Below are positions 50,324-61,361 of a stretch of DNA of 64,000 nucleotides, one piece after another. Where the stretch lies: positions 11,066,633 to 11,130,632 of the forward strand of contig OZ037769.1 in NCBI GenBank assembly GCA_964035545.1, written 5' to 3'. Every line of letters starts with the position of its first letter. The stretch's first letter is position 1. Under the pieces are notes generated by a model, which saw only the letters and a program-made list of their open reading frames with translations, was not told the DNA's origin and did not search any database. Position numbers and translations under genes: made by a program. This stretch comes from Bugula neritina (Eukaryota; Animalia; Bryozoa).

Positions 50324-50865
50324 TATATATATATATATATATATATATATACATACATATATATACATATATATATATATATATATATATATATATATAT
50401 ATATATATATATATATATATATATATATATATATATATATATATATATATATATATATATATATATATATATATATATATATATATATATATATACATAC
50501 ACATATATATATATATATATATATATATATATATATATATATATTGTTATATATATATATATATATATATATATATATATATATATTGTTATATATACTG
50601 CATATACATTGTTATTTATACTGTTATATATACTGCATATAAACTGCATATATACTGTTATATATACTGTATATATGTTGTATATATATACTGTATACAC
50701 TGTATATAGGGTATATATACAGTATATTATATACAGCATATATACTGTATATATAGGCTACTGTTATATATACAGTATATTATATACAGCATATATACTG
50801 TATATTTAGGCTACTGTTATATATACAGTATATTATATACAGCATATATACTGTATATATATATA
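50324..50865. repeat. (TA)n microsatellite grading into a TA-rich ~53-bp minisatellite
   Basis: Near-pure TA to ~50590, then units CTACTGTTATATATACAGTATAT... starting at 50758 and 50811. Confidence 0.95.
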
Positions 50866-50877
50866 ATCACACATCGG

Positions 50878-56800: not shown

Positions 56801-58677
56801 ATTTGAATTAATGTATCATTATAGCAAGGTGGCCAATTGAGGAGTAGCAAGCTTTTAAAAAGCTCTTTACTGGGAAAATATTTCCATTAAAGAGCAGCTT
56901 GATGAGCTTGTGAAATGCATTCCCACAAGGACCAAGCAGCAAATACGGGAAAAAATGTAAAATTATGCTATCGGAGAAAGCAGAAGTATCTCAACTAGTT
57001 GCTTATGTTTTCAGTATCTTTTGTTGTAACTAGTTTTTGAAGTAGCATTTTAGCACCTTATGAAATTGTCAATTTTTCCTATGATAATTTGAGTTGACCA
57101 ATAAAACTGTTCTTGTTTGGCTTGACTCTGCATATGATATTGTATACACCACCTAAGTTTATGGAACCACATAAGTGGGTATTATGTGCACAAATGCCAC
57201 ACAAGTTGGGTACTATTTAAATAAAGTGCTTAGACAATTTTTAATAAATCATTTTTAATAAGAATATTTAGAATAAATAATGTTGTTTAGCTACTATCAA
57301 TGTATTTACTTACTAATTATACTGGTTTTATTCAGAAATGGCTGGATATCACAGTAGTGTTAACTTAGGTGGTGCTATAAACACCACCTAAGTTTATGCA
57401 GCCACATAAGTGGGTATTATGTGCACAAGTGCCACACAAGTTGGGTACTATTTAAATAAAGTGCTTAGACAATTTTAAATAAATCATTTTTAATAAGAAT
57501 ATTTAGAATAAATAATGTTGTTTAGCTACTATCAATGTATTTACCTACTAATTATACTGGTTTTATTCAGAGATGGCTGGATATCACAGTAGTATTAACT
57601 TAGGTGGCGCTATAAACACCACCTAAGTTTATGCAGCCACATAAGTGGGTACTATGTGCACAAGTGCCACACAAGTTGGGTACTATTTAAATAAAATGTT
57701 TAGACTATCTTTAATAAATCGTTTTAATAAGAATATTTAGAATAAATAGTGTTGTTTAGCTACTATCAATGTATTTACCTATTAATTATACTGGTTTTAT
57801 TCAGAAATGGCTGGATATTACAGTAGTGTAAACTTAGGTGGTGCTATAAACACCACCTACGTTTATGCAGCCACATAAGTGGGTATTATGTGCACAAGTG
57901 CCACACAAGTTCGGTACTATCTAAATAAAGTGCTTTGATTATTTTTAATAAATCATTTTTTACGATAATTTTTTTAAATAAATAATGTTACTGTTTACCT
58001 ACTGATAATGTATTTACCAACTTTTTATACTAGTTTTATTCGGAAACAGTTGGATATCACAGTAGTGTAAACTTAGGTAGTGCTATAAACGCCACCTAAG
58101 TTTGTCGAACCACATGAGTGGGTATTATGTGCACAAATGCAACTCAAGTTTGACTAAATTGCTTATTTTAGTTTTAGCTAATACGGATAATGTATTTGCT
58201 GTCTTTTCATACTAGTTCTATCGAGAAACTGCAAGGTACCACAACTACATGAAGAAAAAAATGTTGAATTTTTGCATGAAAGTCATATACGAACGCTTAA
58301 AAGTAGTGAATAAGGCATTATTACTTCAACAATAACATAATTTGTCAAAAATAATGTACAAGCAAATTATCAAAACCATAACCAACTTGAGTGGCAGTTT
58401 GCAATGTGGGAGGATAACTTCCAAATCTAATGTAGACTAACATAGGTGGTGCTGCCACCCAAGTGAGTTGGTTATTAGAAACAAGAAAAGAGGGGGATAA
58501 CTTCTCATATCAAATATAGACCCACTTGTGTAAAGCATGCTTAAAACATGTTTTACACACTTTGAGACCAATTTAGAATATTTCTGAGAAAATTTACTTA
58601 GGTGGTGGTATAAGCACCACCTAGGTTTATGACGCCACACAAGTAGGTACTATATAGACATCTGCCACCTAAGTTGG
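50878..58677 (+). mobile_element. Candidate decayed tyrosine-recombinase (Crypton-like) element
   Basis: 17/18-bp inverted match between 50878-50895 and 58660-58677; a 23-bp identical direct repeat outside both ends; frameshifted recombinase-like and Myb-like peptide remnants in plausible order. Family assignment is inference. Confidence 0.5.
57146..58150 (+). repeat. ~235-bp tandem repeat, 4+ copies, with a 13-7-13 palindrome at each junction
   Basis: Unit starts at 57146, 57381, 57616, 57850 and 58089; AACTTAGGTGGTG-CTATAAA-CACCACCTAAGTT at 57362-57394. Confidence 0.92.
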
Positions 58678-61361
58678 GTACTATCTGACTACTGTTATAT
58701 ATACAGTATATGGTGCATACATACTGTATATATAAAACTATTTTACAAAGTCAATACAATAGATGAAGACAAACCTGATAGGTACAGAAATTTTTTCACC
58801 GTTCATCAGAGTACAGTTTTTCTATCTCACTCTGGTCACTCTCTGTCAGCATTTGGAAGCAAGTTTTGAGCATGCTAAAATTCATAACTCTCATTAAATC
58901 AATGATGATGCATTTCTGTTTAATTAATTTTCTATTTATAACTTTTAAAGGAAGCATCTCACGTACTGTAATATGTCAATGGATATATAATAATTAAGGC
59001 CCATGACATATAAATTGATAATATCTTGAGCATAATATACTTGTGTACTCTGCCACTTCTAAATTGACTTTATACTGTAATCAGTTTATTACTAATATGG
59101 ACATCATTTTCTACAGTGGGTTTTAGGTGCCAAAACCTTTTCTTATTTACAGTAATAACCTGTAACTGCTACAGTTAATTAATAATTGAAAAGTCACTGC
59201 AAGACTTTGCAATGCTTCAAGTTAATAATTTACTTTTGCTATCTATATTAAAAAGTTGTTTTCTTACTATACTTATGTTTTCAAAAGCACAATTTCTTCA
59301 CAGCTTATAGGCTTATACAAGTTTAAAAAAAGTATATTGATGTTTTCATAAATATATGCATGCATAGATTATAAAAGATTCTCACACCATTAGGTAAATA
59401 TAATGTGGTAGTTAACTGTTAAAACGTGGTTATTTTATAACCTTGTGAATTTTAACTTAATGTATCACTAAGCCATATTGCAGTAGAGGAAAACAAACCT
59501 GCTAATACTGCAGAATATACCTACATCCTGTTTGACATGGCAGTCTCTCTGCTCTCTTCCGGTCCCTGATTATGAGCATCTGGCTGTAAGATTATAGTAC
59601 AGGCAGTGGTCAGAGTGTGGGGGTCCTCAAGGACGTGCTGTACCTCTGCTATGTTCTTGGAGAGGAGTTCCTTAAACTTATAGACAAACCCTTCTCCCCC
59701 ATAATATTTTATGACATAGCGTATGAACAATTACTTATTGAATGGTGACTAATTGATAAAAAGCAGTGATCTGAAGCTCCATGTTGAAAGTCAAAGCAAA
59801 TTAGTTACTGATACCTGTTTAACTGCATTACTTACCTGTTTACCTTACTCACCTGTTTACCTGACTCACCTGTTTGCCAGACTTACCTGTTTGATTTTTC
59901 AGGTTTAGGCCCGTTATTTATTCATGTTTTATTTTCGTGTAGAACTTAAAAAGTTTGAAGACTTCCTAAAAGACTTTATTTATGCAGTTTTAAAATATTC
60001 ATATATTATATTTTAGCTATCATCTAGGGTTGTACGCTCTAGCATTGCTGCTCTATAATACACTTTTTGCATCGAATTAATTTGAGATTTTTGATGACGT
60101 TTCTATAGTCTGCTCCGAAGTTTGCAATGTTGTAAAGCTAATGGGAATTATTGCTGACTAATCTTAGCCGCTGCAACACACATGAAGTTGAACCACTGAG
60201 CTGGCTCAAAAGTTTGATTTTTAAGCATTTGTGTTCTATTTTGAAAATTGACAATTGATCCAATATTCAATCTTTTGTTTTCTAGTTTAGTTTATTTTAT
60301 TAATAATTGAAATTGCAGCTCTAGATAAAAAGACAATATCAAAAACAATGCTATTGATAGTATAAGAGGGTACTTCGCTGTTTTCCCCAGTATTTCATTT
60401 TATAAGACTTATAGAAAACTTAAGCCCCCCCCCTCTCCCCCTGGCATTTGGTTGCTGAAATTAGTGTATAGTCAATTTTTAAGATTCTCTGTATTCTGTA
60501 AATAAAGCTAGTTTTCTTTCACAGGTTGTCTAATTACATCAATTAAATAATTACAAAATGTGCTCAATTGATTTATGCAATTATTAGTTTAAGTACCAAA
60601 GAAGGATTTTGATTTTAGCCGAGAGTTGAGTTGGTAGCCTTCAACTAACGGCCTTGACATTTTTACGCAACAAATTTTCAAAAGAGGAGTTGTCACTTTA
60701 CTTCAAAAGCAAATTTAATATGGTAAATAGATTTAGTTATTTTTAAAGTGTAGACATATTTTAAAATAAATTGAAATAATTTTTTGTACACTTATTTCAA
60801 CTGCTGGTGTGTGAAGCATTTTATATGATATTTAAACTGATTATTTGAAAATAGATTGACAATTTGTCTATATTATTGTGAATATCGTTTCATCACACCT
60901 TTCATATCAATTGATATTACTATTTCAGAGCACAAGACAAGAATGTGGTATCGACAATTGTAAATATTTATATGAGCGATAAGTTTGATTATAAAAATAT
61001 GTAATATAATTTTGCTCTAAATAATTACATCCGTTGTACATTCATTTAACTATCCGGCACATCCCGTGACTTTGGGCCTTCAGTATGACTATATGATGCA
61101 GTATATATAACAGGTTTCTTGAAATATAAACATCTGTAATAAGTTAAAAAGAATATAAGAATAGTTAAATTCCTCATTCATAGCCTACTGGCACATGCCA
61201 TGATGATGGGACATGTTTGACTACCACCACCCAAAACATTCAACGGTACAGGTTATAAGGAACTATTAGAATATATATACAGAGACTAGTTGGTGTCATT
61301 AGGTATGAGAACCAGGATCTTTCACTTGTTACTTAAATAGAGAGAAGACAACTCTCTGATT

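Follow-up and report, generated by a model that had tools for sequence, protein, structure and literature searches.

A large non-coding inverted-repeat element in Bugula neritina, probably a non-autonomous DNA transposon that integrates at TA

In a 64-kb stretch of contig 5 (OZ037769.1) of the bryozoan Bugula neritina (C5:11066633-11130632; hereafter the window), we delineated a 7,824-bp element at positions 50866-58689 that is bordered by TA on both sides. It is probably a non-autonomous, low-copy DNA transposon of the cut-and-paste type with terminal inverted repeats (TIRs), integrating at TA. An earlier note, made from the letters of this DNA, had proposed here a Crypton-like tyrosine-recombinase element that targets microsatellites; the mobile element and its TA surroundings stand, and the Crypton does not, which removes a false lead at this locus. 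The boundaries at 50866 and 58689 were set by comparison with other copies in the 216-Mb, 321-contig assembly (~33% G+C), which is the scope of all assembly-wide searches reported below.

Inverted ends and dispersed copies

When compared in inverted orientation, the terminal 30 nt of the left and right ends match at 22 of 30 positions. The left repeat (50866..50895, plus strand) consists of a 12-nt start, ATCACAC..., followed by the 18-mer CCAACTTATGTGGCAGAT, and the right repeat (58660..58689, minus strand) of the 18-mer followed by a 12-nt terminus ending in TCTGAC. The inner part carries most of the agreement, with the 18-mer at 50878 matching the reverse complement of 58660-58677 at 17 of 18 positions; both this pair and a second, inner one (ACTTGTGTGGCG, at 50907 and on the minus strand at ~58634-58647) had been recognized in the earlier note and were recovered here. 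The inverted pair is far above chance level. A related signal came from the 14-bp motif CCAACTTRTGTGGC, counted in the window with ≤2 mismatches: 15 matches were obtained against 0.60 expected, and all of them fall within the element, three at the left end (plus strand), 11 in the right part (minus strand) and one at 58382 (plus strand).

A second full copy is located at C2:14284602-14292390, and brings the number of full-length copies to two. It is 97% identical to the window copy over the full length, homology stops at the TA runs, and the flanks beyond are unrelated. Both termini thus recur on contig 2 at equal spacing, and the terminal inverted repeats common to copies with unrelated flanks, by which TIR cut-and-paste elements are recognized, are present. 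Copies with unrelated flanks show that the element has moved, and recently, which supports the discrete mobile element proposed in the earlier note.

Incomplete copies provide a further view of this mobility. On contig 6, a 3.7-kb deletion derivative (C6:4675341-4679009) has as its right end an inverted left terminus, which joins the core of the element (see below) at window position 54665 via a 6-bp microhomology, as read from the sequences. On contig 2, a solo left end (C2:12570296) extends for 200 bp, after which the upstream flank and its TA run are repeated; this repeat shows the appearance of an unoccupied (TA)n site. Both the contig 6 derivative and this solo end look like products of double-strand-break repair rather than of conservative recombination. 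Over C2 ~12570070-12570720, the same flank with its TA run thus stands on either side of the 200-bp left end, and downstream sequence follows; this tandem structure probably arose when gap repair was aborted after excision. A 557-aa open frame on the minus strand adjoins the solo left end; it is of low complexity, rich in Q, S and P, matches no Pfam family, and is presumably a large host exon.

Other traces of the family are right-end fragments on contigs 2, 3, and 4, along with a partial left end from a diverged relative (86% identical) at C2:14282985-14283090, which follows a TA run 1.5 kb upstream of the full copy on contig 2. The stacking of this fragment and the full copy recalls the end-to-end stacking of plant microsatellite-targeting elements. 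About eight places with two mismatches aside, the 18-mer (≤2 mismatches) is confined to the full copies, the contig 6 derivative, the solo ends, and the right-end fragments, while the 13-7-13 palindromes described below occur genome-wide in just the two full copies and one fragment. Since neither the 18-mer nor the palindrome was found in the other elements examined, we regard this as a small family.

Sister families and association with TA

Two other repeat families, here termed C7-type and C8-type, have the central core of the element (51140..56028) in common with it, at 73-83% identity, and the best-conserved block of the core (52860..53170) reaches 84-96% identity between families. C7-type elements are ~10-16 kb long and are represented by at least 14 full dispersed copies, ~95% alike and with sharp identical ends (e.g., C7:9481363-9491344). 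Their imperfect inverted ends differ from those of the window family and are bordered by (TA)n left and right. Palindromes lie close to each end, and kilobase-long arrays of a 30-bp unit close to the right one alone. We located 24 left and 21 right C7-type ends. Of ten extra left ends, nine proved to be short or missing fragments without a transposase-like open reading frame (ORF), and one extends over ~1 kb of the left end. A 2.4-kb element with ~570-bp inverted ends is nested at the equivalent of window position 53960 in all three of three C7-type copies (e.g., L021:4473-6875), and this shared insertion point implies that the family amplified after that insertion; a further copy of the nested element lies at a contig 8 locus (L028:325-961). 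The C8-type family comprises ~15 core copies on contig 8 alone (C8 ~0.35-4.44 Mb), nearly all on the minus strand, and may represent a chromosome-specific amplification. These copies are embedded in a repeat unit of more than 8.5 kb that includes a 141-aa zinc-knuckle (gag-like) ORF on the opposite strand.

The association with TA is consistent for the element and its C7-type sister family, in agreement with the embedding in TA described in the earlier note. All ends of the window family abut TA or (TA)n. Its left ends directly follow (TA)n, as seen at five loci; on the right, TA comes next after the terminus ...TCTGAC at four independent loci, three of them with long (TA)n. For C7-type elements, TA abuts 20 of 20 left and 20 of 20 right ends, with long runs at 19 of 20 at each end. 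By comparison, (TA)5+ runs make up 0.04% of the remaining window and 2.2% of the loci fetched near elements. In the window family, these TA flanks mask any target duplication.

The exceptional C7-type copy, C5:16261719-16276543, has short TA on both sides and sits in a short repeat of high copy number. The empty site can be read from three copies of this repeat that are uninterrupted; in it, CAAATT is joined directly to TAAGTA, while the filled site reads CAAATT-TATATA-[element]-TAAGTA. The comparison fits a 2-bp TA duplication with four extra TA bases on the left, and for this one event a duplication of 3 bp (TWA), 4 bp, or 8-11 bp is ruled out. This empty site implies that integration at a lone TA is possible, with extra TA units coming along or arising at insertion, and such a landing bears on the birth of TA microsatellites. 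The short repeat that supplied the empty site (around C5:16261599-16261723) has at least 150 candidate copies, ~97% identical, which end near GGTCACATAT and are often followed by TA runs. It is adjoined by a long array of a 21-bp tandem repeat (C5:16260291-16261576).

Internal structure and host flanks

Iterated sites occupy both ends of the element, most extensively on the right. The left subterminal cluster (50878..50990, plus strand) includes three direct copies of the 14-bp motif (50878, 50904, and 50940) and the short palindrome CCACT-C-AGTGG. Beyond the core lies a family-specific segment (56029..57145), seen only in the window and contig 2 copies. The right 1.5 kb then contains a tandem array of a 235-bp unit (57146..58150, minus strand; 4.3 copies), called, like the host tandem repeats of the left flank, by Tandem Repeats Finder. 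Each unit is a duplicated right-end module with a 13-7-13 palindrome, i.e., two inverted half-sites, two single motifs, and a terminus-like AAGTTGGGTACTAT stretch. The right subterminal region (58151..58659, minus strand) completes the element up to the terminal repeat, with motifs at 58382 (plus) and 58634 (minus) and a terminal palindrome at 58597-58625.

On the left, the host DNA (50324..50865) consists of (TA)137, i.e., the long tract that the earlier note had seen nearby and that is present at 50324-50597, followed by 10-bp and 53-bp TA-rich tandem repeats, with the TA at 50864-50865 abutting the element. The right flank (58690..58734) begins with TA and continues with the rest of the host 53-bp repeat. 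An identical 23-mer had been reported outside both ends, and it does occur at 50811 and 58689, along with a third copy at 50757 within the host 53-bp tandem repeat. The right copy is not wholly outside, since it consists of the last base of the element (C, at 58689) and the first 22 bases of the right flank. The 23-mer is therefore not a target-site duplication, because it is a member of the host repeat and its first base at 58689 belongs to the element.

Coding capacity

No ORF in the element exceeds chance expectation: the longest stop-free frame is 85 aa, and ~1.6 such frames are expected by chance in 7.8 kb at 33% GC (estimate). When 92 stop-free pieces of ≥31 aa were compared with Pfam in a single batch, twelve families were returned with a best E of 0.024, and there was no integrase, transposase, zinc-finger, or Myb/SANT family among them. 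The peptide remnants on which the Crypton proposal had been built are present as letters, each in a separate frame that is interrupted by stops. Two of them had been read as zinc-finger and Myb/SANT-like, and neither family was recovered from the 92 pieces; the "Myb/SANT-like" letters fall in the family-specific segment. Six-frame, genome-wide scans for tyrosine recombinases used the profiles PF00589 (Phage_integrase) and PF12012 (DUF3504), the latter derived from the Crypton recombinase domain. PF12012 gave three sub-threshold matches across the genome, none in window-, C7-, or C8-type copies, and PF00589 matches were found solely on the small contigs C74, C200, C212, and C266 and in no element copy. 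The tyrosine-recombinase identity is thus not supported, in that neither the Pfam pieces nor the two profile scans gave such a signal in any copy. Two observations had been named in advance as refuting it: absence of such homology from every copy, which is what we found, and termini that do not co-occur elsewhere, which is not the case here. On the four small contigs, the Phage_integrase ORFs are intact, without stops, and score up to 140 bits; they seem to be of bacterial or phage origin and would in that case belong to a contaminant or symbiont and not to a nuclear element.

Further results speak for a non-coding core. Between the window and a C7-type copy, 20 of 88 indels were multiples of 3, and core conservation was flat along the length, with frameshifting indels throughout. 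The best-conserved block (~300 bp) is free of indels and contains no ORF longer than 46 aa, and neither compensatory base pairs nor covariation were found in it. No Rfam family was matched, and a scan for bacterial-type promoters and terminators stayed at chance level. The ORF at 53703-53957 was considered as an exon and rejected: it shows a weak 3-base substitution periodicity, but ~45 aa in mid-stretch alone are conserved between families, the readings diverge beyond, and no relatives were found by word search. Given the flat conservation, the non-triplet indels, and the lack of an ORF above chance and of any Rfam or covariation signal, we conclude that the core is non-coding, probably passenger DNA, and that the element is non-autonomous.

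Proposed mechanism and alternatives

Taken together, these observations suggest a pathway in which a transposase encoded elsewhere, or now lost from the assembly, would bind the iterated sites and excise the element through double-strand breaks. Integration would then target a TA dinucleotide and duplicate these 2 bp, and the 5-kb core would be carried along as passenger DNA. Insertion may favor TA microsatellites, or the element may seed them. The non-conservative derivatives, along with a ~26-bp spacing of the terminal half-sites at a hypothetical circle junction, favor a DDE-type enzyme, if indirectly.

Several points weigh against this interpretation. The outer 12 nt of the two ends agree at just 5 of 12 positions. 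The 2-bp duplication was read from one sister-family copy and not from the window family, and the empty site is paralogous, not allelic. For the window copy, the target within the 53-bp repeat reconstructs imperfectly, with "GGC" missing. The long TA runs may have been targeted, or else grown or seeded after insertion, and both ideas are found in the plant literature (PMC5907723). A search of the assembly revealed no autonomous copy with these termini or sites; it covered the copies and ends other than the three largest of the sister family (C9:9118978-9134813, C5:16261719-16276543, and C7:11832473-11846514) and the ~eight two-mismatch places. Since neither a transposase nor an autonomous copy was found, the enzyme class is one that we infer.

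In a more novel reading, unlikely in our estimation, these families belong to an undescribed TA-specific lineage of marine-invertebrate transposons. Putative binding-site arrays at the ends of such elements would evolve fast around a conserved 5-kb non-coding core, and the elements may create or expand the flanking TA microsatellites. Their enzyme could then be a transposase of a new kind, or even a recombinase that uses the 13-7-13 palindromes. A Mutator-like element (MULE) similar to those that target TA microsatellites in plants (MuTAnT, TAFT, Micron, and SaTar) is improbable. The plant picture of inverted-repeat elements in variable (TA)n does match, including the related fragment 1.5 kb upstream of the contig 2 copy; however, the single empty site lacks the 8-11-bp duplication expected of Mutator-like elements, no MULE domain was detected among the 92 Pfam-scanned pieces, and Mutator-like TA targeters are plant elements, while the host here is an invertebrate. 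Somewhat less credible again is a tyrosine-recombinase element, Crypton-like or other, that moves through a circular intermediate, with the 13-7-13 palindromes as core sites, TA as the crossover, and a gene that is decayed or supplied in trans. The palindromes do have a loxP/FRT-like geometry, the flanking TA might represent the short direct repeat that site-specific recombination is expected to give, and the uneven TA split at the informative site (6 bases left, 2 right) would fit the partition of a TA-containing circle junction. Tyrosine-recombinase core sites, however, are spaced by 6-8 bp (PMC3212892), while the terminal half-sites would lie ~26 bp apart at such a junction, as read from the sequence, and the full palindromes are internal rather than terminal. 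In addition, the element has inverted-repeat ends, which Cryptons lack (PMC3212892), a tyrosine-recombinase signal was present in no copy and on no large contig, and the deletion derivative and solo end resemble break repair and would not be left by conservative recombination.

The two remaining explanations are weaker still. A rolling-circle element of the Helitron/Helentron kind would be a very remote candidate. Tandem arrays are frequent in such elements, AT or TT serves as their insertion site, and both families here have a TC start one base after the TA run, together with long one-sided tandem arrays. Nonetheless, the 3' ends are CTGAC and GAATC instead of CTRR, with no GC-rich hairpin 10-12 nt upstream; the inverted ends and inverted site arrays are clear, and Helitrons and Helentrons have no inverted ends; the contig 6 derivative is still TA-flanked with two left ends; and no Rep/helicase signal was obtained from the 92 pieces in Pfam. 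Finally, there is next to no chance that the sequence is not mobile at all and that segmental duplication in a repeat-rich region produced its copies. While the low copy number and the clustering of the C8-type relatives on one contig in the same orientation would be in line with duplication, homology between the copies of contig 5 and contig 2 breaks off precisely at the termini, beyond which the flanks are unrelated. For the C7-type sister family, the copies are dispersed, their ends are sharp and identical, and there is a clean empty site at a paralogous locus.

Comparison with known systems

A TIR transposon of the cut-and-paste type with TA as its target would be unsurprising in kind, and the present description should help in annotating the repeats of this genome. 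Duplication of 2 bp (TA) is otherwise a typical trait of Tc1/mariner/pogo elements. Non-autonomous members of these groups resemble the element in their inverted ends, a TA target with an apparent 2-bp duplication, a presumed dependence on a transposase in trans, and internal-deletion derivatives. Unlike them, the families described here are very large (7.8-16 kb), with numerous repeats of the subterminal sites and one-sided arrays on the kilobase scale, and the search for a DDE/D transposase gave none. A PIF/Harbinger affiliation was considered and rejected, since the intact element of that type at 23797-29189 in the same window has unrelated termini and the empty site leaves no room for a TAA/TTA duplication.

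Cryptons carry a tyrosine-recombinase gene, and both inverted-repeat ends and long direct repeats are absent from them (PMC3212892); active copies have been described (PMC9977147). Some likeness may be seen in the possible short TA direct repeat at both ends of the element and in its internal palindromes with recombinase-like geometry, set against its inverted-repeat ends and the lack of a tyrosine recombinase. Of the identical 4-6-bp terminal direct repeats that mark Cryptons and serve as their recombination substrate, what is seen here is TA on both sides, which is uninformative in TA-rich DNA. The earlier note had also held that some Cryptons target microsatellites; the word "microsatellite" does not occur in PMC3212892, and the claim was thus not found there.

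Closer parallels for the TA surroundings come from plants and crabs. MuTAnT, TAFT, Micron, and SaTar are plant Mutator-like inverted-repeat elements found in variable (TA)n, which produce 8-11-bp duplications outside microsatellites (PMC4486113, PMC5907723). The elements described here are like them in being bordered left and right by variable (TA)n and in their short TA targets, which seem to have expanded after insertion, and unlike them in using TA alone at the one informative site, in their invertebrate host, and in being 10-40x longer. Endogenous nimaviruses of crabs, which have a Ginger2-like integrase, insert into (AT/TA)n (PMC10871703). They share with the element defined inverted ends, integration at AT/TA repeats, and a marine invertebrate host, and differ in that the element has no integrase gene, has unrelated termini, and is not a viral genome. 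In the literature searched, the habit of abutting TA is thus associated mainly with plant Mutator-like elements and crab endogenous viruses, and the present analysis documents, in a marine invertebrate, two large gene-less inverted-repeat families of which nearly every end abuts a TA run.

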